A DNA stretch of 64,000 bases from Takakia lepidozioides (lineage: Eukaryota; Plantae; Bryophyta): the NCBI GenBank assembly GCA_030704615.1, contig CM060731.1, positions 53,196,001-53,260,000 on the forward strand, read 5' to 3'. The notes beneath the pieces are model-generated. The model did not search any database, was not told where the DNA came from, and worked only from the letters and a program-made list of their open reading frames with translations. Position numbers and translations under genes: made by a program. Within the stretch, counting starts at the first letter, position 1; every line of letters starts with the position of its first letter. Positions 2,495 to 64,000 of this stretch are shown here, in pieces.

Positions 2495-2781
2495 GTTTTA
2501 CACTACTGTAGCCTTCCTCCTTACTCGATAAAGAGCTGCAGAAGATGTGCCCTTAAAGTGACTGAGGTAATTGGAACTTGGCAGAGCTCTCATCTTTGTG
2601 CTTTTCTTGCAGGCAGGTCAAGCAAAGAGCGAACAACGACTCTGGCAGGAGTTCCTCTCACATCCTTCACAATTGTGGAACAATGGGTTTGATGAGGTGA
2701 GGCTATCTTCATCTTCATTTATAATTTTGAAATAGGTTGTCAAGGGGGGCGTGCAACTGAAGCCTGCGCCTATGCAAGGTT

Positions 2782-5700
2782 GTGTTCTCACCTACCCATT
2801 GGTGGTTTTCACACAGAAGTTCAAGATCATGGGAGATCGGACAAAAAGTCACAATTGAGGCCCTTTGGATTGGGGGATTGTCAAGTACTCCTGGGGTGAA
2901 AGCAGTGCTAGTTGCCATGATGGAAGGTCAAGCACAATCCGTTGATGGATTAAACAAGAAGTCATTTGGCTCTTCTGGGGATGTGCTGACACTACGGAAG
3001 GGAGGACAACTGAAGGAGGCCTTGCACGTTTTGACTAACCAAGGATTTTCGCCAGACTCCAATACCTATGTGTGCCTATTGTCGGAGTGCATCAAAAGTG
3101 GAAACCTTGCATGTGCATGCCCACATTATCCAAAGTGGATTCAAGCCAAACATCTTTCTACTCAACACCCTTGTAAACATGTATGCCAAGTGCGGAAATG
3201 TGTTGGATGCACGCCTAGTGTTTGACAACATGGTGAAACGAGATGGGGTTACATGGACCAAAATGATCGCAGGATATGCTCGGCATGGGTGTGGCAGGGA
3301 GGCTTTCGAGATCTATCAGCAGATGCTACAGGAAGGGGTGATGCCAAACAACATCACATTCATTTGCATTCTCAAGGCCTGTGCCAGTCTAGGAGCTCTG
3401 GAAAAGGGCAAAGTGGTCCATGCCCACGTTACCCAAACGGGATTCAAGCCAAACATCTTTCTACTCAACACCCGAATCAATATGTATGTTAAGTGCGGAA
3501 ATTTGGTGGATGCACGCCTGGTGTTTGACACAATTCTTGAACGAGATGTGTTTACATGGACTATAATGATGGCAGGATATGCCAAGCATGGGTTTGGGAA
3601 GATGGCCATAGAGATTTATGACCAAATGAAATGGGAAGGGGTGACACCCAACAGGGTCACGTTCATTTCAGTTCTCAAGGCATGTGCCAGCCTGGCTGCA
3701 CTAGAAAGGGGCGTGGAGGTCCATGCTGACATCATCAAAGCTGGAATTGCACCAGATGTCATTTTGGAGACTGCCCTTGTTAACATGTATGCCAAATGCG
3801 GGAATATGAAAGATGCACGTCAGGTGTTCGACAATATGGCTATGCGAAATGTCATCTCTTGGAGTGCGATGACTGCAGGATATGCTGAGCATGGGTGTGG
3901 TAGGGAGGCTTTAGAGATCTATGAGCAAATGATCCAGGAAAGGGTGACCCCTGACAGGGTCACGTTCATTTGTGCTCTCAATGCGTGTGCCAGCCTGGCG
4001 ACCCTGGAAAATGGCATGGAGGTTCATGGTGACATCATCAAAGCTGGAATTGCACCAGATGTCGTTCTGGAGACCGCCCTTGTCAACATGTATGCCAGAT
4101 GTGGGAGCACAAAGGATGCACGTGAAGTGTTCGACAAAATGGCGGAGCGGAATGTGGTCTCATGGAATGTGATGACCACAGGATATGCCCAACAAGGGTG
4201 TGGTTTGGAGGCTTTGGAGATATATGAGCAAATGGTCCGGGAAGGGGTGACACCTGATAAGGTCACGTTCACTTGTGTTCTCAAGGCATGTGCCAGCCTG
4301 ACAGCCCTGGAAAAGGGCATTAAGGTCCATGGTGATATCATCAAAGCTGGAATTGCTCCAGATCTCATTCTGGAGAATACGCTTGTTGACATGTATGCCA
4401 AATGCGGGAGTATACAGGATGCCCGTCATGTTTTCAACAAGATGGCAGAGCGAAATGTGGTCTCATGGAACGCAATGTGCGGAGGATATGCTCAGCATGG
4501 GTGTGGTAGAGAAGCTTTTGAGATGTACGAGCAAATGATACAGGATGGGATGACACCCAACAAAGTCACGTTCATTTGCATTCTCAATGCGTGTGCCAGT
4601 GTGGCAGCTCTTGGAAAGGGCAGAGAGGTCCATGCTGACATCATCAAAGCTGGAATTGTGCCAGATGTCATTCTGGAGACTGCCCTTGTTAACATGTATG
4701 CCAAGTGCGGCAGCATAAAAGAGGCTCGTCAAGTGTTTGACAAAATGGTTGAACGAAATGTGGTCTCATGGAATGCGATGAGCACAGGATATGTTCAGCA
4801 AGGGTGTGCGAGGGAGGCTTTGGAGATGTACGAGCAGATGATACAAGAAAAGGTCACACCTGATAAAGTGACATTCATTTGTGTTCTAAGTGCATGTGCC
4901 AGCCTGGCAGCCCTGGAAAAGGGCATAGAGGTCCATGCTGACATCATCAAAGCTGGAATTGTGGCATATATAAATTTGGAGAATACCCTTCTCAACATGT
5001 ATGCCAAATGCGGGAACATAAAGGATGCACGTCAAGTGTTCAACAGTATGGCCGAACGAAATGTAGTGTCTTGGAATGCAATGATTGCTGGTTATGCCCA
5101 GCATGGGTGCGGAATGGAAGGCTTGCCTCTTTTTGAACAGATGCAACAGGAAGGGGTAAAGCCGAATGGTATCACCTTTGTTTGTGTGCTCTCCGCGTGT
5201 AGCCATGTTGGCCTGGTGGATGAAGGTTGTCACTACTTCGATTCCATGGATCGAGACCACAGCCTCACCCCCACAATGGAGCATTTTGGCTGCATGGTGG
5301 ACCTTCTTGGCCGTGCTGGCCAATTGCACAAGGCAGAGGATTTGATTAACAAAATGCCAGTTGAACCAGGTGCTGGCGTCTGGGGAGCCTTGCTTGGTGC
5401 CTGCAGAATTCATGGAAATGTGGAGCTGGCAGAGCGTGCGGCGAAATTCCTTCTCAGGTGGGATCCACAGGATGCTGCAACTTATGTGCTACTTTCAAAT
5501 ATCTATGCTGCGGCTGGCAGGTGGGATGATACTGCAAAGGTGAGAAAAATGATGCAGGACAGAGGTGTCAGAGGGGCACCAGGGCACTCCTGTGTTGAGG
5601 TGGACAACCAGGTGCATACGTTCATTGTAGATGACAAAGCACATCATCAAATTGAAGAAATCCATGGTGAGCTAAAGAGATTGTCTGGGCAGATGAAGGA

Positions 5701-5986
5701 GGCTGGGTATGTGCCTGACACCCGATATGTATTGCATGATGTGATGGAGGAGCAAAAACAAACTTCTCTTTGCTACCACAGTGAGAGACTGGCCATTGCT
5801 TTTGGGCTCATCAGCACGCCCCCTGGGACTCCTCTCCGTGTCATCAAGAATCTTCGGGTTTGTGGTGACTGTCACATGGCCACCAGGTTCATCTCCAAGA
5901 TTGTTGGGCGAGCAATTGTTGTGCGGGATGCCAACCGCTTTCACCACTTCCAATATGGGGTTTGTTCTTGTGGGGACTATTGGTAA
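2782..5986 (+). CDS. PLS-class PPR protein with E1-E2-DYW cytidine deaminase domain (C-to-U editing factor); 5' frameshift near 3110, possibly a young pseudogene
   Basis: ORF 3068-5986 holds about 22 P/L/S motifs in 101-aa (303-bp) triplets, then P2-L2-S2, E1, E2, a PG box (PGHSCVEV), HSERLA, CGDC and terminal SCGDYW. The N-terminal part (GQLKEAL...PDSNTYVCLLSECIKSGNLA) is in ORF 2782-3225, a different frame. First in-frame ATG after the shift is at 3179. Confidence 0.93.
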
Positions 5987-6134
5987 AACCGACAACATGC
6001 ATTATGCTCACCACTGCAGTAAAGAGTTTTTTCTTTTTTCATCCGGCAGTCAGCTCCCCCTTAATTACAGCGGGAGGAGAAAATAACCTCTTTCAAAGTA
6101 ACCTCGCCATGAGGCAGATACCACGGATTATGAT

Positions 6135-7325
6135 ATGATGGAGACTGCCCTTGTCAGCATGTATGCCAAATGCGGGAGCATGAAGGATGCTGCTTCAAGT
6201 GTTTCACAATATGGCCCACAAGAATGTGGTTTCATGGAGTGCGATGATTGCAGGATACACTGAGCAGGGGTATTGTAGGGTGGCTTTTGGGATGTATGAG
6301 CAGATGATAAGGGAAGGGGTGCTACCGAACAAAGTCACCTTCATCTGCGTTCTCAAGGCCTGTGCCAAACTCAGAAGCCCTGGTAAAAGGCCAAGAGGTC
6401 CATGGTGACATCATCAAAATTGGGATTGCAACAGACATCATGCTGGAGACTACTCTTGTTGACATGTATGCCAAATGTGGGAGCATGAGGGATGCATGCC
6501 AAGTGTTTGACAATGTGGCTCAGCGAAATGTGGTCTCATGGAGTGCGATGATTGCAGGATATGTTCAGCATGGTTGTGGTACGGAGGCCCTACAACTATT
6601 TGAACAAATTCAACAGGAAGGCTTGAAACCAAATGTTATCACCTTACATGTGTTCTGTATGCATGCAGTCATGTGGGTCTTGTGGATGAAGGGCGCCATT
6701 GTTTTCATTCCATGAGGAGATCATGACCTCACTCCTACAGTGGAGCATTTTGTCTGCATGGTGGACCTTCTTGGCCGTTCAGGGCAATTGGATAGGTAGA
6801 GGACTTCATACCCAGAATGCCACTCCAACCCGATTCAGCGGTGTGGGGGGCTTGGCTTAGTGCCTGCAGAATTCATGGTAATGTAGATGTAGCCGAACGT
6901 GTGGCAAAATGCCTTCTCAAGTGGTATCCATAGGACACTGCTACTTACGCATCTATGCTGCTGCCGGCAGATGGGGGGATACAGCAAGGATGAGAAAAAT
7001 GATGCAGGAGAGAGGTGTAAGAAATGAGCCAGGTGCGGCTGCATCGAGGTTGATAACCGGATGCATTGTTGTAGATGACAAAATTGCATCTACAAACTGA
7101 GAAAGTCCTCGCTGAACTGAAGAGATTTTCTGGTTGGATGGAGGAGGCCGGGCACATGCCTGACATATGTTCAGCATTGCATGATGTGGAGGAAGAGAAA
7201 TGTGTGGTGACTGCCACACTGCCAGCAAGGTCATCTCAAAGATTGATGGAAGAGCAAATGTTGTGCGGGATGCCAGCTGCTTTCATCACTTCCAAGATGG
7301 GTTGTTGTTGTAGGACTGCTGGTGA
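6135..7325 (+). pseudogene. Tandem PLS-E-DYW PPR pseudogene (5'-truncated)
   Basis: Motifs [51 protein letters not shown] and VRDA..FHHF are scattered across frames with several frameshifts and stops. The HxE segment between LHDVEEEK and CGDCH is deleted. Confidence 0.9.
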
Positions 7326-16142: not shown

Positions 16143-19100
16143 GGTCCAAAGTTGGACATTGAATTCTGAGGCTGAACCTGCAAGGTCAATACTGTCTATA
16201 ATAGTTTACATTTAGTAGTGTAACAGACTGTAGCTGATTGACGAATGCTTGGAAAACCTTGGCTTGTCTGACCAAAGGCATTGGGGTTAACCCTCCATGT
16301 CATCAGCTGACAATTGGCATGAGCTGGAGGGCAGCCCAGACAGGCAGGCAGCCATGCGCCCGTCATGCATCCCATTCATGATTGCATTCTGGGCCAGAAA
16401 CATTGGCAAAATAGACCATATAGTGTATTATAGCTAGGTTGGAAGCAGTTGAAAGACACTAGGTTGAGATCTGGTCCAAAACAAAAGAACAATATTTCCG
16501 TTTGCTCTATCTCATGGTATTCTTTCAAAAAGTATACAGCAGTTCTGGAACATCAGCTTTTTGGTTTTTATGTTCTTGTGTTCGTGAAGACTGTTCATTT
16601 GTAGAGGGTTGTTGGCCCTGCCTTCAGCAGGTAGCCTACCCATTCAGTTGCATGGAAGGACCTTAAGACCTGATATCTTTGAGAGGGTCCCCGCTAGGCA
16701 GAGGTTCCTTTTGTTCTTTATGTGTTCCATTTATGGCTGAATGTGGATACTAGGAGATCAACTTAGTAGATGAATCTCCAATGCATCCCACATCAACAGA
16801 GGAAGGAGAATCTCTAGTGAAGCAGGGCCTACGTTTATGTCACGCCTTGTTACAGTTACCAACATACAAAGCGCCAGCTAGGGTTTAGGGTGTATAAGGT
16901 GGGAGTCTAGAAAGCCACCCTCAAGGCAAGTTGATATGGAAATGAAGGTGATACAATGTGATCCCCATACTTGGCTGACTGGACTCCCAGCAGAAAAGGA
17001 AACCTGGGCTTGGTGTGTACTGCCCTCTCTGTATACAGGAAGTGCAAAGGGTAAGAAACTCGGCCGAGCTGCATGCAAAGTGGAGCTCTCTCAGCTAAAC
17101 GAAGTATTACAGATGAGAACAGTAAAAGAAAGAAGCATAGAGCTTCAGTCAGTTCATGGTAGCGTCGATGCTTACTGTACAGACGCTGTCAATGGATGGT
17201 GGCACTCCTGTAGCAGGAAAGCAGAGATCACTCGCTCAGATGACTGCAAGGAGATGAGATGAAACAGAGGTAAATTTGACATGTAGTGAGAAGTGCAGTG
17301 GCAAGGGTGCGAGAGCGGGCAGCCTCTCATTTTGGTGACGTTTGGGGGACGGGAGGAGAGAGAGATGATGTGTCCTTGGAAAGGACTGAAGGAAAGAGAC
17401 GTACAAAATGCGACAGCAAATGATAGTTCAGTCCTGTGTGCGATCCTTGAAGCTGGATGATCGTTTGCCATGTATAGAGGAGCTTGTTGCTTCTGTCTCT
17501 TTCTCAGTCACCGGCGAGAATGGCAGCTTCTTCCGGCGTTCGCCTGCCCACTCCAAACACAAGGCCCTGTCCTCTCGCTTCGGTCATGCGAGAGCTCTTG
17601 CGTCATGCAGCGGATTAAAGAGCTGGGCTGTGGAGCTGAAAGTGGCATCCCACTTGGCAATGCGCAGAAGACGGAGTCCCTTGCATGTGGTAACTGGGGC
17701 GCCTTCAGGGGAGTCATTCAAACTAGGTGAGAACAAGAAACACTTGCCCGTTTCCTTTTCGGGGGTTCGCTGTGTTGTATGCGCCTTAGGATGCACGCGT
17801 GAAATTGTCTTCTACGCAATTTAGCAGAAACGAATGTACTCTGGGCAATGAAGCAAGAAAGTGCCCGGGATAGTTACACAAGGCCGATAACTTGATATAT
17901 CTGACGCGTAGGTCAACGCTGGAGCATGGAACAGCGCTGGCAGGAGTTTCTTAAAGATCCTTCACAATGGTACAGTAGCGTTGACAAGGTGGGTTTTCTT
18001 CATGGAGGATGTGAAGGAATCTGAGGGAGTTTGACTGAACTCTGGTATGATCATACTGTGTGGACTGGATTGTACCCCTAGTTGTTGAGTGAAGTTAGAA
18101 TCTCGCTTTGCTCTGCAAAAATTGATTTTACAGTCCTTATGGTAGGTCGTTCTTCCTGAGGGCATGAAAGTAGGATGCGCAAGGTCTATTCACTGGAGCT
18201 TGCAAGGTACTTGGGAGGGTTGAGACTGACACTGCTCAGCTGCTCTCTGGTCGTTTTCACGGACCGCTCCCAAATGTCCAGCCTACAGAGACATAAGCTT
18301 GTTGTTGAAAGCTCACTAGCACTCCACAAAGAAACTTGTCGAAATGTTGATGCTGTTGGATGTTTGGGCACGAAGGTCTACTGCGGAGCATGGAGCAGTG
18401 CTGGCATAATTTTCTTAAAGGTCCTTCACAATGGTGGAACAACTGCAATTGTAAGGTGTGGCTTTTTTAATGTACGATGTGAAGAAGTTTGTCCATTTTG
18501 CAAATGTGGGCTCTTCCAGTCAGTATCATGACTTGCTGTCTTTCCTGTTTACAAGGTACTTGGGAGGGTCAGCTTGGTTTTAGGAGGCTGTATTTAAATC
18601 TATGGCTGCTCAGCTGCACCATGTTGGATCTCACAGACAAGTCCGAGATCACCCGACTACAGACGCAAGCAGCACACACAGGAGGTCCTTTGGGGTTGAT
18701 GGTGGGTTGAATTCCCTGTGGGTGAAAGAAAAGCTAGCTGCTTTCATGACACCAGGTCAAGGACAATGTGGTGAGGGCACCTTCTTCTGCATTGCACCTG
18801 TTTTGCACTCTTATCAGAGTTGTCCCTAATTTTCATGTTGAATTCTGCAAGCTCGTTGGGTGGATTTATGGTGGTTGGGAGTGATTTTTCTTAACTGCAT
18901 GTGGCAACAGGAAATTATCCAAAAACAGATAGCAGAGACGAGGTGAAGCTTTGGAATGAATATTCTTTGGACCCAAGTCAATGGTGGGACAATCGAGGCG
19001 AAAAGGTGAATGCCTGTTAGGTTATGGAGAGAAGCAGACAACAAGATGGATTGCAAAGAATTCTTGGCCCGGCACATTTTTAAAGTCTTGGGAGCAATTC

Positions 19101-19208
19101 AGCTAGTGTGTGATAAGTACGGTCGAGGTGTTTGCTAGAACAATTTTATGCTGTCATTGTCAGCTGGCAAGGCAAGGATGTGTACATTATTGGGATCTGA
19201 AGGAGCAG

Positions 19209-22134
19209 GGATGGAGTGTGGGTCCAGAATCATCCAAGAGGGCTGGATTTCAAGCACAAGATTACCTATGATTTCCTGTGGATCAGTAGCTACAAGAAAC
19301 CTGCATGGGTAGATAGTCAACTGGGAGCAGCAGCACAGTTGATACAATCAGGCACCTCCACCATGACCAGAGTGTCCGAAAGAGGACCAAGAGAGGGAGT
19401 CCAGAATCCCTCTTCCGGTACTTGTGGGCATGTGAGGACGCTATGTGAGGCAGGGCGACTGAAAGAGGCTCTACAGACTCTAAACCAAGGAGGAATTTCA
19501 GCAGATTCAGATACCTATGTTCGACTCTTGCACAAGTGCATCAAGATGAATGGCCTGGAAGCTGGAAAGCAGGTGCACTCTCACATTATCAAAAGTGGAT
19601 TCAAGCCAAATGTCTTTCTACACAACACCCTTGTCAACATGTATGTTAAGTGCGGCAGCATTGTGGATGCACACCAAATGTTCAGCAAAATGCCTCAACG
19701 TGATCTGATCACATGGAATATAATGATGGCAGGATTTACCAAGCATGGGTGTGGTGAGAAAACCTTGGAGACATATGAGGAATTGATTCGGGAAGGTGTG
19801 AAGCCTGACCAAATCACGTTTGTTTGCCTTTGCAATGCATTGACGAGCCTGGCAGATCTGGAAAGGGGCATAGAGGTCCATGGTGACATTGTTAAAGCCG
19901 GAATTGTACCAGATGTCATTCTCAACACTGCCCTGATGAAAATGTATGCCAAATGTGGGAGCATCAAGGATGCGAAGGGAGTGTTTGACAAAATGGCTGA
20001 ACGAGATGTGGTGTCATGGAATGCAATGATCACAGGATATGCCCAGGATGGGTCCAGGATGGAGGCTTTGGAGACCTATGAGCAAATGATGCGGGAAGGG
20101 GTGAAGCCCGACGGGGTCACGTTTGTTTGTGTTTGCAATGTATGTGCGAGCCTGGCAGCCCTGGAGAAGGGCAAAGAGGTCCATGGTGACATGATCAAAG
20201 CTGGAATTGTACCGAGTGTCATTCTGAACACTGCCCTGGTGGACATGTATGCCAAATGCGGCAGCATCAAAGATGCAGAGGGAGTGTTCGACAATATGGT
20301 TGAACGAAATGTGGTGTCTTGGAATGCGATGGTCGCAGGATATGCACAGCAGGGGTATGGGAAGAAGGCTTTGGAGACCTATGAGCAAATGATGCGGGAA
20401 GGGGTGAACCCGGACCAGGTTACATTCATTTGTGTTTGCAATGCGTGTGCAAGCCTGTCAGCCCTGGAAAAGGGCAAAGAGGTCCATGGTTACATCATGA
20501 AATTGGGAATTGTTCCAGATCTTATTCTGAACAATACCCTCATGGACATGTATGCCAAATGTGGCAGCATCGATGCTGCAAAGGGAGTGTTTGACAATAT
20601 GGCTGAACGAGATGTGGTGTCCTGGAATGCGATGATTGCAGGATATGCCCAGCATGGGTGCGGGATGGAGGCTTTGAAGACCTATGAGCAAATGATGCAT
20701 GAAGGGGTGAAGCCGGACCAGGTCACATTCATTTGTGTTTGCAATGCATGTGTGAGCCTGTCAGCCCTGGAAAAGGGTCAAGAGGTCCATGGTGACATTG
20801 TCAAAGCTGGAATTGTGCCAGATGTCATTCTGAACACTTCCCTTATGAAAATGTATGCCAAATGTGGGAGCATCGAGGATGCGAAGGGAGTGTTTGACAA
20901 TATGGCCGGACGTGATGTGGTGTCATGGAATGTGATGATCGCAGGATATGCACAGCAGGGGTGCGGGATGAAGGCTTTGGAGGCATATGAGCAAATGATG
21001 GGGGAAGGGGTGAAGCCCAACAATGTCACATTTGTTTGCATTTGCAATGCGTGTGCAAGGCTGGCAGCCCTGGAAAACGGCAAAGAGGTCCATGGTGACA
21101 TCATCAAAGCTGGAATTGTACCAGATGTCATTCTGAACACTGCCCTGATGAACATGTATGCCAAATGTGGGAGCATCAAGGATGCGAAGGGAGTGTTTGA
21201 CAATATGGCTGAACGCAATGTGGTGTCCTGGACCTCGATGATTGCAGGATATGTGCAGCATGGGTGCGGGATGGAAGCTTTGGAGACCTATGAGCAAATG
21301 ATGCAGGAAGGGGTGAAGCCGGACCAGGTCACGTTCATTTGTGTTTGCAACGCGTGTGCGAACCTGTCAGCCCTGGAAAAGGGCAAAGAGGTCCATGGTG
21401 ACATCATCAAAGCGGGAATTGTACCAGATGTCACTCTGAGCAGTGCCCTGGTGGACATGTATGCCAAATGCGGCAGCATCGAAGATGCAGAGGGGGTGTT
21501 CGACAATATGGCCGAACGAAATGTGGTGTCCTGCAACGCGATGATTGCAGGATATGCACAGCATGGTTATGATATGGAGGCCCTGCAACTATTGGAAGAA
21601 ATGCAAGTGGAAGGCTTGAAGCTTGACAGTATCACTTTTCTATGTGTTCTCTCTGCATGCAGCCATGCTGGCCTAGTGGATGAAGGCAAATACTACTTTG
21701 ACTCCCTCAGTCAAGATCATGGCATCACTCCGGCAGTGCAGCACTTTGTCTCCATGGTGGACCTTCTTGGCCGTGCGGGTCGATTGAATGAGGCAGAGGA
21801 TTTCATTAACAGAATGCCTATCAAACCCAATGCTGTGGTATGGATGGCCTTGCTGGGTGCCTGCAGAATGCACGGCAATGTGGAGATGGCTGAACGTGCA
21901 GCAACATCTATTCTCAAGTGGAATGAACAGGACGCTGCAACTTATGTGTTGCTATCAAACATCTACGCTGCAGCTGGCAGGTGGGATGATAGTGCAAAGG
22001 TGAGAAAAATGATGAAGGTCAGAGGGGTTAGAAATGAGCCAGGTCGCTGCTGCACGGAGGTCAGCAACAGGGTGCACACCTTTGTTGTAGATGAGAAATT
22101 GCATCCAAAAATTGTGGAAATGCAGCTGAGATGA
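19209..22134 (+). CDS. PLS-class PPR protein ending shortly after the PG box (E+-type); main exon, first ATG at 19363
   Basis: Uninterrupted ORF of about 2.9 kb with 23 L/S/P motifs, E1, E2 and PGRCCTEV...HPK, then TGA at 22132 where the paralogue at 5678 has AGA. Acceptor-like gcag at 19205-19208. Confidence 0.92.
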
Positions 22135-22451
22135 TTGTCTGGGCAGATGTTGAATTCAAAGTGTCAGTTGATGACAGTCACGTAAACAGGGTATGTGCCT
22201 ATTGCATGATGAGGGGAGGAGCAGAAGAGATTTTCTCTTTCCCACCACAGTGACAGGCTGGCCATTGGTTTTGGGCTGATCAGCATGTACCTAGGATGCC
22301 TCGCTGTCATCATGAATCTCAGGTATGTGGTGACTGACACACCTCCACCAAGTTCATCTCAAAGATTGCTGGCTGAGGAATTGTTGTATGGGATGCCAAC
22401 CAGTTTCACCACTTCGAAGATGGGGTTTGTTATTGTGGCGATTACTGGTGA
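22135..22451 (+). pseudogene. Decayed DYW domain remnant downstream of the PPR stop codon
   Basis: LSGQM, GYVP, LHD, HSDRLAIGFGLIS, CGD*H, KFISKIAG* and FHHFEDGVCYCGDYW* are recognisable but broken by indels and stops. Confidence 0.9.
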
Positions 22452-23074
22452 AAAGATGTTTTCCTGGAAAGGTGCAAGTGTCTTGCTTCATTCATGATCT
22501 GCGTAGCTTCTTCTTCCATACACCATCAATCCTGGAATATTGGCTATGACGGACTGCTGAGGCATTTCCTCTGGCATATCAACCTTCCAAGAGTCCATTG
22601 AAGGGTCTACCCAGCATAGGTGGAATGTCAGCCCATAAAGGACTTGAGCAGGTAATGAGGAAAGGGGGTATTTTATGCTAGAGCATTAACCAAAATGGGC
22701 AGGAGATGAACCGCTCCACGTCCGTTCTTTCTCAGACATCAAGAATTAACAACATAAACTGTGGTGATGGTTCAGAATATGAAACCACTTTCCTCCACCT
22801 TATACAGATGTTCTTCATGAAATACTTGAGATACTGGAAAGTTGCAAGGTCTATGCCTACAAAGTTGCTCTGGTACGCAACAAATCAGAAATATGGGGGT
22901 TGTATTTGCATCCATTATTCACCCTGTACTGCATATGTATTGGCCCTCTAGGTGGAAACTCTGAAAATTCATAACCAATTCAAAAGAAGTCCATTGAGTT
23001 TGGCTTTGAATGCACTAGTCTATTACTGAAAATTATAAACAAACTTGTTTTTTGATACCCTAACCCATTTTTTT

Positions 23075-24017
23075 CTTTGGAAATAGGCCGGGGACAACCT
23101 GGATTGTCCAGTGTGTCGGATTGTCCAGAGTGTAATAACGGCCTGGAAACAATTGAGCACTGCTTAATCCTATGTCCTAAAGCTCGTAGGATCTGGACTA
23201 AAGTATGCCAACTTTACTCTGCCTGGACCTCCCTCCCTGCCTCGCCGGACCCCTCGTTCTTCCTACTCAACCACAGGGGTGATCTCGATAAAATGCCGGG
23301 TGTGGGCCTGCCTTAGAGCACACACACTTTGGCTTATCTGGAAAGCAAGATGCTCTTGGGTTTATGAGGGGAAACCCCCCAGCGGCAGATCCATATTTTA
23401 AAAATCTATTGGGATCTGATGACTGAGGGGAGGAAAGCTTGGATGTCTTTGTGTGCAGCTCTTCCCAGAGCTTCGGACCAACGGAGGAGGAAATTTCATT
23501 GTAACTTTGACCTCACCTGGGGTAAGGGCAGCTTGCTTGGCTCCCGTCTTTCCGACCCGCACTTCCATTGGCCCGCCATCCCCACGCAATAGGAAGTCCC
23601 TGGTGATGGGGAGGAGGGTGACTGCAACTGGCACCACCGCCGTGCTCGCGACCCCAAGCTCAAGACATAGCTTCAATTCTACTTTCTAGCTTCTTGGTTA
23701 TGAAACTCTTCTCCGTGTCCAGCATTTTTCTCGTGCTCCCTCATCAGCCCCCGTCTTTTCCTGCCTTTTCCCACCTTCGCCACAGAACTCTGATTTCTGC
23801 TTATGTGGGACCTTCGCCGGTTTCATCCTGTTCTCTTGTTCTCGGGACTTGATATTCACTTCATTCTCTTTTGCTAGATTGCAAGGTTCCAGGGAGGGGT
23901 CCCCACTGTAAGCCTTCACGGCCTCAATGGTGGTTATTTTTTCCACCATCTAATTTCGAGGGCTTCCATCCCCTCTTCTATAAAAAAGAAAATTAAGAAA
24001 AAATTAAAACACAAAAA
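23075..24017 (+). mobile_element. 5'-truncated non-LTR retrotransposon (LINE) 3' fragment
   Basis: CPECNNGLETIEHCLILCPKARRIW is the zf-RVT-type CCHC motif of LINE ORF2. It is followed by LWLIWKARCSWVYEG in a shifted frame and an A-rich tail at about 23980-24017. No target-site duplication was found. Confidence 0.75.
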
Positions 24018-24494: not shown

Positions 24495-27182
24495 TTACCA
24501 ATAGTCCCCACAAGAGCAAACGCCTCCTTCAAAGTGGTGGAAGCGATTGGCATCCCGTACAACAATTGCTCGTCCAACTATCTTTGAGATAAACTTGGTG
24601 GCAGTGTGGCAGTCACCACACACCCGAAGGTTCTTGATGACACACAGAGGTGTCCCAGCGGACGTGCTGATGAGCCCAAAAGCAATAGCCAGCTTCTCAC
24701 TGTGGTGTGAAAGTGAAAATACCTTATGCTCCTCCGCCACATTACGCAAAACAAAGCTTGTGTCAGGCATGTACCCGGCCTCCCTCATTTGGCCTGACAA
24801 AATCTCCAGCTTAGCATGGATTTCCTCAATTTGTGGATGAAATTTGTCATCTGCAACGAATGTATGCACGCAGTTGTTGACCTCAATGCTGCACTGACCT
24901 GGCGCCTTTCTGACGCCTCTGTCCTTCATCATTTTTCTCACCTTGGCAGAATCGTCCCACCTCCCAGCTGCGGCATAGATGTTTGATAATAGGGCGTAAG
25001 TGGCAGCATCCTGTGGATCCCACTTGAGAACCCATTTTGCTGCGTGTTCTGCCACCTCCACATTGCCATGAGTTCGGCAGGCACCAAGTAAGGCCCCCCA
25101 CACCGCAGCACCTGGTTCAATTGGCATATTGCCTATGAAGTCGTTTGCCTCATCCAACCGCCCTGCACGGCCAAGAAGGTCCACCATGCAGCCAAAATGC
25201 TGCAATGCAGGAGAGAGGCCATGATTTTGACTCATGGAATTGAAGTAGTGACAGCCTTCATCCACTAACCCCACATGGCTACATGCAGAGAGAACACATG
25301 TAAAGGTGATCCCATTTGGCTTCAAGTCTGCCTGTTTCATTTCTTCAAATAGTTGCAGGGCCTCCAGACCGTGTCCATGCTGTGCATATCCGGCAATCAT
25401 TGCACTCCATGAGATCACATTTTGTTCACCCATATTGTCAAAAACTTGACGTGCATCCTTCATGCTCCCACATTTGGCATACATGTCAGCAAGGGCAGTC
25501 TCAAGAGTGATATCTGACCCAATTCCAGATTTGACAATATCCGCATGGACCTCTTTGCCCTTTCCCAGAGCTGCCAGGCTGGCACATGCATTCAGAACGC
25601 AAATAAATGTGACCTTGTTTGGCATTATCCCTTCTCTTATCATATTCTCATACATCTCAAAAGTCTCCCTACCAGAACCATGCTGAGCATATCCTGCAAT
25701 CATAGTAGTCCACGAGACCACATCCGGCTTCAAGCCTTTCTGTTGCATTTGTTCAAATAGTTGCAGGGCCTCCCTACCACACCCATGCTGAACATATCCT
25801 GCGATCATCACATTCCATGAGACCACATTTCGCTGACTCATGTTATCAAACATTTGACGTGCATCTTTCATGCTACCGCATTTGGCATACATGTCAATAA
25901 GGGTATTGTCCAAATTAATATATGATGCAATTCCAGCTTTGATAATGTCAGCATGGATCTCTTTGCCCTTTTCCAGGACTGCCAGGCTGGCACATGCCTT
26001 GAGAATGCAGATGAATGTGACCCTGTCGGGCGTCACTCCTTCATGTACCATTTGCTCATAGATCTTGAAAGTGTCCCTGCCACACCCATGCTGAGCATAT
26101 GCTGCGATCATGGAGTTCCATGACACCATGTTCGGTTTCAAGCCTTCCTGTTGCATTTGTTGGAATAGTTGCAAGCCATCCCTGCCATATCCATGCTGAG
26201 CATATCCTGTGACCATCGAACTCCATGAGACCTCGTCTCGTTCAGCCATGTTGTCAAAGACTTGACGTGCATCCGTTATGCTCCCACATTTGGCATACAT
26301 GTCGATAAGTGTATTGTCCAAATTTATATATGAGGCAATTCCAGCTTTGATGATGTCAGCATGGACCTCTTTGCCTTTTTTGAGGGCTCCCAGGTTGGCA
26401 CACGCATTGAGAACACAAATGAATGTAACCTTGTTGGGTGTCAATCCTTCCCATAACATATGCTCATACATCTCCAAAGCCTCCCTACCATACCCATGCT
26501 GAGCATATCCTGCAATCATGGTGCTCCAGGACACCACATTTCGTTTAACCATACCGTTGAACAATCGAGAGGCATCCTTTATGCTCCCTGATTTGGCGTA
26601 CATGTTGATAAGGGCAGTCTCCAGAATGATGTCCAGTGCAATTCTAGCTTTGACCATGTCAGCATGGACCTCTTTACCCTTTTCGATAGCTCCCATCCTG
26701 GCACATGCATTGAGGACGCTAATAAACGTAACCTTGTTGGCTATCACTCCTTCCCATTTCATCTGTTCATAGATCTTGAAGGCCTCACTACCACAACCAT
26801 GTTTGACATACCCTGCCATAATTGTATTCCACGTAGACACGTCACGATTATACATATTGTCAAAAACTAGGCGTGCAGCCATGACACTTCCACACTTTGC
26901 GTACATGTTCATGAGAATGTTGAGTAGAAAGATGTCTGGCTTGAATCCACTTTCAATAATGTGGGCATGCACCTGCTTTCCCTCTGCTAGGCCTTTCTTC
27001 TCGATGCATTCCTGAAGGAGACAAGCATAAGTATTTCGGTCTGCCGAAATGCCGTCTTTGTTCAAAAGGTGCAGTGCCTCTTCCAATTGTCCTGCCTTGC
27101 ATAGTCGCTTGACATCCCTGCAGGTGCCAGAAGAGTTCTTGTTGACTCTGTCTCTTCGTCCTCTTTCCAAAGCAGGAGTCAT
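24495..27182 (-). CDS. PLS-class PPR protein with intact array and E1-E2-DYW domain (C-to-U editing factor); main exon, upstream exons likely
   Basis: ORF of about 2.7 kb with 19 PPR motifs, PGQCSIEV, HSEKLA, CGDC and terminal SCGDYW. ATG in ccaccATG context at 27182. Confidence 0.95.
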   Translation of the reverse strand: MTPALERGRRDRVNKNSSGTCRDVKRLCKAGQLEEALHLLNKDGISADRNTYACLLQECIEKKGLAEGKQVHAHIIESGFKPDIFLLNILMNMYAKCGSVMAARLVFDNMYNRDVSTWNTIMAGYVKHGCGSEAFKIYEQMKWEGVIANKVTFISVLNACARMGAIEKGKEVHADMVKARIALDIILETALINMYAKSGSIKDASRLFNGMVKRNVVSWSTMIAGYAQHGYGREALEMYEHMLWEGLTPNKVTFICVLNACANLGALKKGKEVHADIIKAGIASYINLDNTLIDMYAKCGSITDARQVFDNMAERDEVSWSSMVTGYAQHGYGRDGLQLFQQMQQEGLKPNMVSWNSMIAAYAQHGCGRDTFKIYEQMVHEGVTPDRVTFICILKACASLAVLEKGKEIHADIIKAGIASYINLDNTLIDMYAKCGSMKDARQMFDNMSQRNVVSWNVMIAGYVQHGCGREALQLFEQMQQKGLKPDVVSWTTMIAGYAQHGSGRETFEMYENMIREGIMPNKVTFICVLNACASLAALGKGKEVHADIVKSGIGSDITLETALADMYAKCGSMKDARQVFDNMGEQNVISWSAMIAGYAQHGHGLEALQLFEEMKQADLKPNGITFTCVLSACSHVGLVDEGCHYFNSMSQNHGLSPALQHFGCMVDLLGRAGRLDEANDFIGNMPIEPGAAVWGALLGACRTHGNVEVAEHAAKWVLKWDPQDAATYALLSNIYAAAGRWDDSAKVRKMMKDRGVRKAPGQCSIEVNNCVHTFVADDKFHPQIEEIHAKLEILSGQMREAGYMPDTSFVLRNVAEEHKVFSLSHHSEKLAIAFGLISTSAGTPLCVIKNLRVCGDCHTATKFISKIVGRAIVVRDANRFHHFEGGVCSCGDYW

Positions 27183-29746
27183 GGTGGAGGTTCCTGCTTC
27201 ACACAACTGTCCCTGATCCCATCCTGTGACCCTGCATCAAATAAAACAATTTCATGACAACAGAATCTTTGATAAATAAGGGGTCTTTGCATTGGTTAGA
27301 CCCTACAATCACAGGGTACATATACCAACTCGGACACCAGCTGGAAAAACACTTCTGACCACTGCCTTTACCTTCAAGCGGAAAACTCATAACATTCAAT
27401 ATCTATGTTAAACTGTTAAACTTCCCCGTTCGGTAACGTCCTGTGCACCCATTGATACATGACTTTTCTACTTCATCTCTAGCAGAACACCCATGCCACT
27501 AGCAGAGAAATCAGAAAAATCATGAGGTCTGCATCTGTACAAGAGGAACTGTCATACTGGAAGGGCCCGGCAATCCCCTCCACCAGGGCTTGCCACGGAC
27601 CTCAGCCTAGCTGCTTCCAGCTTCTCCAGTTGAACATTTTCCAAGGGATGATTCTTTGAATCTTTGAATCCACAGTGCCTCGTTGGTACTCTTGCACCTG
27701 GAATATGGTGTTCTGGGATTGATCTGCAACCATAATCCATCCCTGCCTCAACAACAGTAATTCATGCAGACTACCTGACAGAGGTGACACGTTACTGTGG
27801 TTGCACTTTAGTCACAACGTTGAGGTGAAAGGGCCTGCAAAAAATGTACCCACAAGAGGGTGGATGGCGTAGCCTTGTAGCCTTGTGAGAGAGAGAGAGC
27901 TTGTCAATGCATCATCTTGTCGCCCTTCAACTCCAACTGCCTTGACAACAAAAATGCATAGATCCTCTGCACTGCTTGACGTAGCGGACAAGGACACATC
28001 ACCCCTTCCTGACACTAGTTCATATGCTAATTCTTCGACAGACTAGAAAAATGCGTGTGTGTGTATCTCTGTGAAAGAGAAAGAGAGAATCTTATTGTGC
28101 GGTTTCAAACCGCCAGGACCTGGGAAAGCAGGGTGAAATTGTAGTAAACAACGTTACATATAAGCACTGCTACATTACCATCCACAATAGGTATGACGGA
28201 AGTGGTTGTGGCCGCACTGTCAGGAGAATTCACAGGAAATTTTTCCCATTCCATCTTGTTGTGTGGTTATGGTATAACACCACGCACCTTACTTCCCTCG
28301 AATGTCCCTCCATCGACTGGGTTTTGAAAACTTTGCCTCCTCCTCGTCCGATGTTGGCTTCCTGCATTTTTGCTGGTGTTAGCAAGTCCCTCACTGAATG
28401 TGACCATGGGCGGCCGTGGCCTCACCAGCTGGCCTCGTTGCTCATTTCCCCGTCTATAAACTTCTCCTTCTACTTCTCCATTCATCCATTGCCCTGCAAT
28501 TGGGTTGAAACTTTCGAAACAAATCTCAATCCCATGCGGTTTGGAAAGGTTAGAGGACCGTACAGACTGTGCAACCCATATGAAAATTCCAGACCAAAAT
28601 CGGGCTTGTGAAGAGCGTAGCCCCAGCAAGACTCATCAGAGCACTCGACGATGAGTGATGAAGGTGTGGAGAAGGCAGACATTCCCGGATACGACGCCAT
28701 GGCTGCTGCTCCATCTCTCGTGCAGATGAATAGATGAATAAGGGGGGCCGCGTGCAGTTTTCCAGAAGAAATCGTCTACTTAGCGATGAATAAACCCCTT
28801 CATCCATCGATCTGCCCTCAGCATGAAGACACTTGAATGATCGACCTTGCCGTCAGCAGAGAGCAACTCTCAATTTGGAGGTGGAGCAAGCGAATGTGGC
28901 TGTATTGAAGGGGTATCATTTTGAAGGGAAGAAGGAAGAGGTGGGTGTACAAAACATTCTTTGAAGGTGAGTGCTTTCTTCGAATTTGATTTGGCTGCAA
29001 TTCGCGTGCGGGTGCCGCCCTGTGGATTGGAAGAATGTGGATTTGTCTTTTCCGGAGCAGATTTCAACTTTCCTGGGAGGAAAAATAGTAGCTGATAGGC
29101 AGTGAGCGTGGAAATGGACCTGCTTCTCCAATCATGAATTCAGATATGGTGCATCTGATGGATAATTGCAGTAGTTCATGGTTTTCGTGCTTCATGGGTT
29201 CAGTTATGCATAAGGAAACCAAGGAAGAAGTTATCGGGCATACTTAGCTTGTCTTGGGAGAATCCTTAGGATCTGCTCTCCAGTGCCAAAAGCTTAACTT
29301 TTTGAGGTAAGGACACAAAAATGGAGAGTGTGTGTGCAAACTTGAGGTATACTGCGGCTCTTCAAAGACAGTGAGATGGGTGGCACTTAAAATTGGTTCT
29401 GATTGGCAGTCCGGGCATGACCAGGTCAATCTGTCTAGGGCTGGTCAGCGTTGTGCAAAGGAAAGGTCAGGTAGTAGAGGGCCTTCAGCGGTCCACGATT
29501 GAACAGTCACTTCTTGTTCTTGGGAAAATGCTCTGTGCTCTGTTCCCTTTACAATAGGCTTCGGGAGGGTCAGCAATATGACCTCAAGAAATGCTACGAA
29601 ATAAAATGGTATAATTGAGGACTATTCAGCATATGGAGGTTCTCCAGTACATACCATATTGAAGTTCAGGATAGTTTCGAGGTGTGCTTCACAGCTCTCA
29701 AACTCAAATGTTGTTGCATAAAGCAGAGCTGTTACTCTTTGGCGGC

Positions 29747-63539: not shown

Positions 63540-63853
63540 GCTTCACCCCTTCCCCCATCATTTGCTTTCAGGTCTCCAAAGCCTCATCCCGCGCTCCTGC
63601 TCTGCACACCCTGCAAGCATCGCGTTCCACGACACCACTTCTCGTTTGGCCATGGTGTTGAACACTCCCTTGGCATCCTCAATAAACCCACATTTGGCAT
63701 ACTTGTTCACCAGGGCAGGGTTCAGAATGACATCTGGTACAAATCCAGCTTTGACGATGTCACCATGGACCTCTTTCCCCTTTTCTAGAGATCCTAGCCT
63801 TGCACACGCATTGCAAACACAAACAAACGTGATGTGGTTGGGCTTCACCCTTC
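63540..63853 (-). pseudogene. Isolated single L-S-P PPR triplet fragment
   Basis: ITFVCVCNACARL..LEKGKEVHGDIVKAG.VPDVILN.ALVN.YAKCG..EDAKGVF..MA.R.VVSWNAM with a 1-nt frameshift and no PPR sequence on either side. Confidence 0.9.
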
Positions 63854-64000
63854 GTACAGCAATTGCTCAACAGACTGATTTAATGTAAACTCAGGGCAGG
63901 GATCCTACCTTTGAATAACAAACAGAAGCAGAGAGGAAATGGAGAGTAATTGCAACGAACTCAACTAATCACACTAGTTCCTATGATCAATTGCATTTGC

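Follow-up and report, generated by a model that had tools for sequence, protein, structure and literature searches.

We analyzed a 64,000-nucleotide stretch of the genome of Takakia lepidozioides (contig CM060731.1 of GenBank assembly GCA_030704615.1, forward-strand positions 53,196,001 to 53,260,000). This whole stretch, hereafter the window, is numbered from its first letter and contains a cluster of PLS-class pentatricopeptide repeat (PPR) genes among ordinary intron-containing host genes. Our subject is one of these PPR genes, gene B, whose open array is followed by the remains of a DYW cytidine deaminase domain. Judged from its sequence, gene B appears to be a nuclear gene of a seed-free land plant that belongs to the PLS class of PPR genes, within the PDF-PPR-DYW family, and has E+ architecture.

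Gene B and the DYW scar behind its stop

Gene B has a stop-free frame from 19201 to 22131 on the plus strand, closed by a TGA at 22132-22134. The initial annotation had described a PPR/E1/E2/PG-box open reading frame (ORF) of about 2.9 kb free of lesions, and this was borne out. The ORF listing gives 972 codons at 19216-22134, but the GTG with which it begins is not a real start and reflects bacterial ORF calling; an ATG first occurs at 19360. Pfam matched the ORF with PPR_2 (394 bits), PPR (327 bits) and E_motif (PF20431, 60.9 bits), and detected no DYW domain (PF14432) in it. Parsed in a 101-aa triplet register, the protein consists of seven P-L-S triplets, P2-L2-S2, E1, E2 and a PG box of 32 aa. 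Motif lengths are those of PLS-class PPR proteins, with P motifs of 35 aa, L motifs of 35-36 aa and S motifs of 31-32 aa arranged in triplets.

The array of seven P1-L1-S1 triplets, the first of them degenerate, occupies 19402-21522 (Pfam, TRF and motif parse) and is followed by P2-L2-S2 at 21523-21831, where position 4 of P2 is C rather than the usual W. Pfam scores of the array are on a par with those of two paralogues in the window, A and C. Specificity residues (position 5 and the last position) are canonical in all 14 P1/P2/S1 motifs: the code pairs are ND, ND, ND, ND, NN, TD and ND in the P motifs and ND, TD, TN, ND, TD, TN and SN in the S1 motifs. The pairs thus vary from unit to unit and include only ND, NN, TD, TN and SN, in agreement with the 14 canonical pairs first reported. 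At the DNA level the last six triplets (19705-21522) form a 303-bp tandem repeat, for which TRF gave a span of 19765-21566 with 5.9 copies, 85% matches and no indels. Units B2-B6 differ from each other by 12-16% and from the units of A and C by 21-28%, which indicates that the array was amplified or homogenised within gene B's own sublineage.

Behind the array, E1 and E2 (21832-22035) are lesion-free in the Pfam E_motif match and in the paralogue alignment. The PG box or "E+" stretch (22036-22134), which corresponds to the first 32 aa of a DYW domain, has lost 6 bp at about 22123 and is closed by the TGA. The protein therefore stops 32 aa past E2, with HPKIVEMQLR as its last residues, which is the end point of the E+ subgroup, as the initial annotation had proposed. 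Of the features of a complete PPR-DYW editing factor, E1 and E2 are present, and an in-frame DYW domain with the zinc-binding and catalytic residues HxE(x)nCxxC and a terminal DYW is absent.

DNA on the 3' side of the stop is colinear with the DYW domains of paralogues A (3068-5986, plus strand) and C (27206-24495, minus strand), both intact, down to the common CGDYW-stop. Alignment to A and C defines a scar at 22135-22451 on the plus strand with three nonsense changes, about seven indels and an altered catalytic motif. Called against the two paralogues, its lesions begin with the 6-bp deletion at about 22123 and the TGA at 22132, where A has AGA. They continue with a rearranged segment at 22141-22205 (65 bp, net +16 bp), in which GYVP is the sole recognisable part, and a 1-bp deletion at about 22214. 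HSE has become HSD (GAG to GAC, about 22252), and deletions of 1, 2 and 1 bp follow at about 22291, 22304 and 22320. A TGY codon has changed to TGA at 22335, converting CGDC to CGD-stop at the second C of CxxC, and CGA has changed to TGA at 22374. The ancestral stop is kept at 22449-22451 after CGDYW, and the last 24 aa of the scar still match DYW_deaminase in Pfam (E = 7.9e-9).

Exact short-read contigs cover most of the scar. Among the pieces listed, run X1 gave contigs at 22066-22284 and 22344-22469, leaving 22286-22343 without a contig; run X6, from a separate sample and study, gave a contig at 22085-22285. Exact contigs from two samples make an assembly error unlikely, so that the check for such errors proposed at the outset came out in favor of the reported remnant, and the scar lesions are real. 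Splicing around the lesions was considered and rejected: they affect all three frames across 320 bp, and the plus strand has no further DYW domain downstream.

Selection on the open part

With no close relative at hand, selection was judged with the two paralogues in the window and with gene B's own repeat units. Word-index protein searches gave best identities of 54% for the whole ORF and 63% for the P2 to PG-box tail, and exact look-ups of proteins A, B and C returned no match.

Lesions are distributed very unevenly across the stop. About 10 disabling or radical lesions fall within the 317 bp of the scar, compared with none in the approximately 2.9 kb of the ORF, and the 300 bp of E1-E2-PG that adjoin the scar are without lesion. 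Seven indels occur in the scar and none in the ORF, in which tens of frameshifts would be expected at the scar's indel rate. The ORF offers 358 one-step routes to a stop codon; under neutrality, divergences of 0.05-0.10 would have produced 6-12 stops, and the probability of the observed zero is 2.6e-3 to 6.6e-6.

Substitution patterns point in the same direction. Compared with their consensus, units B2-B6 have pS 0.162 and pN 0.059; the ratio of the two, 0.36, departs from neutrality (p = 9e-8), and the same measure for the units of paralogue A is 0.38; pairwise comparison of the units in the gene B array gave a mean ratio of nonsynonymous to synonymous change (dN/dS) of 0.37. From P2 to the PG box, dN/dS is 0.18 (A-B) and 0.30 (C-B), compared with 0.20 for the intact pair A-C, and the values for E1, E2 and the PG box are 0.21-0.26. 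Changes specific to gene B in this tail number 14/20/31 by codon position. In the clean part of the scar (22213-22451) the corresponding counts are 4/12/6, in contrast to 0/2/12 for changes specific to C, whose DYW domain is constrained. From this surplus of first- and second-position changes, the scar seems to have evolved neutrally for about 0.06-0.09 substitutions per site.

Spread lesions and a dN/dS near 1, by which pseudogenes are defined, are not seen in 19228-22131 and occur only in the DYW part and in one PDF exon. The absence of lesions, combined with a dN/dS of about 0.36 similar to that of a paralogue, indicates that the open part has been under purifying selection, and these sequence comparisons show that selection to equal in strength that on a paralogue with a retained DYW domain. 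A common neutral history of array and scar is excluded on the same comparisons. The initial annotation had claimed that the array was kept by selection after the deaminase died, and had named a dN/dS near 1 across the array as the result that would speak against it; with 0.36 among gene B's own units, 0.18-0.30 in the tail, and no lesions as against about 10, the claim held.

The 5' end and the surrounding copies

Upstream of the array lie three OSB-like PDF modules, all of them interrupted by an intron; of these, the third is well preserved and the two before it have decayed. The PDF motif has the form SDPSQWWDNR...PDFKHK...LW...P.WV, is encoded by small exons that precede the array, and heads 24 of 120 related proteins (Diphasiastrum, Sphagnum, Calypogeia); no Pfam family matched it. 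Its exons were located one by one by tblastn with the N-termini of PDF-bearing PPR proteins. The first half of PDF-a (17926-17988, plus strand) is decayed (WQEFLKDPSQW) and followed by a GT donor, and its second half, at about 18160-18310, is barely recognisable. PDF-b has a first-half exon at 18390-18455 (plus strand; CWHNFLKGPSQWWNN) with donor AAG|GT at 18455/18456 and a second-half exon at 18637-18770 (plus strand), the downstream part of which (VDGGLNSLWVKEKLAAF) is in the next frame.

PDF-c begins with an exon at 18911-19005 (plus strand; KLWNEYSLDPSQWWDNRGEK), bordered by acceptor CAG|G at 18910/18911 and donor AAG|GTGAAT at 19005/19006; its phase fits that of exon 18637-18770 (one base plus two). 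By sequence reading, a putative intron (GT...CCAG, 19006-19227, plus strand) with an in-frame TGA at 19198 splits this module, and the main exon starts with its second half at 19228-19359 (plus strand; NHPRGLDFKHK, LWIS, PAWV), in frame with the PPR array. Such a GT-AG model splices PDF-c (18911-19005 to 19228 onward) in frame into the array, and the spacing to DFKHK agrees with that in Sphagnum and Diphasiastrum proteins. In-frame ATGs are present at 18602 (in the intron before the second PDF-b exon), 18746 and 19360.

Short-read contigs were matched to 18800-22800 at 90% likeness, and the large PPR family dominated the result: a single DNA run yielded about 60,000 short contigs that match these 4 kb at 90% or more. 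Among the most repeated stretches were 18934-19067 and 19202-19335, the PDF-c exons, which implies that PDF exons are conserved at the DNA level across the family as strongly as PPR motifs. An exact contig within the array (19731-19888) has a depth of 74, compared with 75-84 in the flanks, and is therefore single-copy, so that no near-identical donor copy is evident for that part. Runs X5 and X6, which we guessed to be RNA, gave contigs that match the scar and the 350 bp downstream of it exactly, with evenly covered flanks.

Paralogue A (2586-5986, plus strand) has a PDF module, a PLS array, E motifs and an intact DYW domain, with a 972-codon ORF at 3068-5986. Its N-terminus is cut off from this ORF by the loss of 11 bp within the first L motif, between 3060 and 3100, and its PDF module and first P motif (2586-3100) are in another frame. 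The DYW pattern of A is relaxed, with A-only changes of 6/4/4 by codon position; A could be either a gene shortened at its N-terminus or a pseudogene of young age. Directly behind it lies copy D (about 6100-7300, plus strand), a short PPR-DYW pseudogene whose array, E motifs and DYW domain are all riddled with stops and frame changes; it served as a control for ordinary decay. Paralogue C (24495-27206, minus strand) is a PLS-E-DYW gene with an intact main exon, convergent with gene B at a distance of 2 kb, and no PDF module was found within 3.8 kb upstream of it. At 26234-26025 and 25826-25617 (minus strand), a P2-type motif (LQLFQQMQQEGLKPN) is directly followed by P1 inside the array of C, suggesting internal unequal recombination.

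Genes B and C form an imperfect inverted repeat (21218-22124 and 24817-25723, 907 nt, 78% complementary), and read-through of the convergent pair could give double-stranded RNA. Between them, a zf-RVT fragment (23077-23313, plus strand; Pfam, 25 bits, below cut-off) is probably the remnant of a non-LTR retroelement. We also considered that gene B might be transposon cargo; no terminal inverted repeats or shared flanks surround it, the only inverted repeats being those of B and C, and this idea was rejected. At the far end of the window, fragment E (63540-63869, minus strand), which may run past the window end, is a decayed PLS unit (CVCNAC, VILN, DAKGVF) with 78-82% identity to gene B units. 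As it shares the gene B unit signature, B-type arrays form a subfamily. Neighbouring genes encode UBX, coproporphyrinogen oxidase, KARI, a SASA esterase and a methyltransferase.

Interpretation and relation to known editing systems

In our preferred explanation, the cis DYW cytidine deaminase of gene B decayed into a non-coding scar and selection afterwards kept the array with E1, E2 and the PG box, with editing by a deaminase acting in trans favored over pure binding. We regard this account as somewhat probable. The open remainder would consist of a PDF module, seven PLS triplets, P2-L2-S2, E1, E2 and the PG box; selection on the array and E1-E2-PG would have continued after the deaminase was lost, and for a substantial time the product would have been a deaminase-less RNA-binding protein. 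Its array would bind organellar RNA through the PPR code; read from the P and S motifs, the bound bases would be approximately U,U,G,U,A,U,U,U,G,Y,A,G,A,U. The shortened protein would be unable to deaminate alone. E1-E2-PG is not needed for mere binding and is required for editing in known E and E+ factors; since this dispensable part was nevertheless kept, a deaminase provided by another protein is favored for the period under selection, and pure RNA binding (stabilising or blocking) ranks second.

Several observations weigh against this explanation. No DYW donor within the window and no target site turned up. A +1 frameshift lies in the G run of PDF-b at 18692-18695, where the ancestral frame stops at TGA 18697-18699, and it may cut off the ancestral N-terminus with any targeting peptide; this exon (18637-18770) lies outside the stretch that was matched with short-read contigs. 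Gene B may no longer work today. Runs X5 and X6 may be DNA, and a contig of these runs crosses the 19005/19006 border unspliced at similar depth. The open part has signs of mild erosion, namely the change of W to C in P2, an E_motif score of 60.9 bits compared with 74.5 (A) and 76.9 (C), and a P2 to PG-box profile score of 335 bits compared with 363-372 for A and C. When substitutions alone are contrasted between scar and ORF the difference is not significant (Fisher p = 0.13), so that the case rests mainly on the placement of stops and indels, and some scar lesions may derive from one complex event. Part of the synonymous divergence of the array may predate DYW loss. In addition, the PPR copies around gene B include broken ones: A is frameshifted, and D and E are badly decayed.

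Some of these points would fit an ordinary pseudogene, the whole gene being dead by now, with a DYW domain lost earlier, a central ORF that has merely not been hit and a signature of older selection. The frameshift in PDF-b, the decayed D and E, the E-motif and tail-profile scores slightly below those of A and C and the DNA-like appearance of the guessed-RNA runs are all in line with it. Moreover, frameshifted A still holds an open ORF of 972 codons, and the array pS of 0.16 may partly predate DYW loss, B-specific divergence of the scar being about 0.09. However, about 10 lesions in 320 bp and none in 2.9 kb are impossible under one neutral period. The probability of no stop is at most 2.6e-3 at d = 0.05, no frameshift is present where tens are expected, and, if the lesions were independent, the chance that all ten fall in the last 10% of the gene is about 1e-10, a value that withstands a search over thousands of loci. 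This explanation accounts for the present state only, not for an array that survived long after its DYW domain decayed, and we consider it unlikely, albeit a serious contender. A patchwork origin, in which gene conversion or recombination from a working paralogue overwrote the centre of an old dead copy decayed at both ends, or in which a dead DYW tail was joined to a live array, would explain decay on either side of a clean centre; in both cases the intact centre would carry no information on selection at this locus. Ectopic exchange is favored by the huge family of similar DNA (the approximately 60,000 contigs at 90% or more on 4 kb), B-type units exist elsewhere (fragment E), and the array of C seems to have recombined internally between motifs of P2 and P1 type. 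Nevertheless, the single-copy depth of 19731-19888 leaves no near-identical donor for that part, the only B-like copy within reach, fragment E, differs by 18-22%, units that differ by 12-16% without indels argue against recent homogenisation, and B-specific third-position divergence is not clearly different across the stop. We judge such a patchwork to be improbable.

Gene B might also be functional without editing, as an RNA binder that stabilises or blocks an organellar transcript or aids its splicing. Some E-class PPR proteins of flowering plants have a role in splicing rather than editing, and canonical code pairs that vary between units in an array under purifying selection are in line with a binder. 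No DYW protein has been demonstrated to act in trans in mosses, the editors characterised in this group each being one polypeptide (PMC10482289). A pure binder would, however, be expected to lose E1, E2 and the PG box, which are lesion-free beside a ruined DYW domain with dN/dS of 0.21-0.26; a non-editing role therefore seems rather unlikely to us. By far the least credible alternative is an assembly artefact, that is, a DYW domain intact in the organism and lesions that are consensus errors. Four of the indels are of 1-2 bp, a common long-read error type, and 22286-22343 lacks a contig among the pieces listed. Yet exact contigs cover 22066-22285 in two samples and 22344-22469 in one run, and polishing errors do not typically take the form of three nonsense substitutions, a deletion of 6 bp and a rearranged segment of 65 bp.

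If a selected array did outlive its deaminase, as we favor, close parallels are found in flowering plants. Their E+ factor CRR4 cooperates with DYW1, as do SLO2/CLB19-type factors with DYW2 and NUWA. Gene B resembles flowering-plant E+ factors in its PLS array, E1, E2, an end about 30 aa into the DYW domain and the lack of its own HxE...CxxC. It differs from them in belonging to a seed-free lineage, in the scar still readable behind the stop and in the OSB-like PDF modules in front; in addition, no DYW1-, DYW2- or MEF8-like donor was found for it in the window, and it is known from sequence alone. Editosome compositions of flowering plants are listed in PMC13386178, according to which MORF partners are confined to seed plants. 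The path proposed for gene B, from a complete PPR-DYW editor to a truncated, helper-dependent factor, is that of CWM1, which has a shortened C-terminus in Arabidopsis and a complete DYW domain in Macadamia (Oldenkott et al. 2020, cited in PMC10482289). On that citation, truncated CWM1 works and has a known target, whereas the evidence for gene B comes from sequence. Physcomitrium PPR56 (PMC10482289) shares the PLS-E1-E2 organization, and its state would be the ancestral one for gene B, kept by paralogue C; unlike PPR56, gene B is without a working deaminase and cannot act alone.

DYW-less models are already catalogued in seed-free plants, which limits the novelty of gene B. In a 2026 census (PMC13386178), truncated PLS/E proteins are numerous in lycophytes, E+ proteins are enriched in hornworts, and Takakia has 2,016 PPR and 750 DYW genes. 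Lycophyte and moss PLS, E and E+ models in that census end at or just past the PG box as gene B does, and our protein matches ending there included Diphasiastrum P0046, P0081 and P0088, Sphagnum-like P0021, Ginkgo and Cryptomeria. These catalogued models are annotation-level, whereas for gene B the scar and the selection contrast are documented. Gene B is real and well documented, and exemplifies in an unusual lineage a type of change that is already known. The initial annotation had gone further and implied an independently evolved split editing system or a non-editing role in RNA stabilisation or splicing. That a seed-free, moss-grade lineage independently evolved selected PLS-E+ factors that borrow a DYW domain, in a split editosome without MORF, gained no support from the window, in which no DYW donor was found, and we view this wider proposal as doubtful.

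The scar shows how an E+ end can originate, namely by a stop just behind the PG box and not by deletion. In the accepted picture, moss editing is carried out by a single polypeptide and the separation of target recognition from the DYW domain is a flowering-plant feature (PMC10482289). A dead deaminase combined with a selected array and E motifs would be a natural intermediate of that separation in an unexpected lineage. If gene B is not expressed, counts of E+, E and PLS proteins in seed-free PPR censuses would include slowly dying genes. If it is expressed, one could ask with it directly whether DYW activity in trans occurs where MORF-type helpers are lacking.

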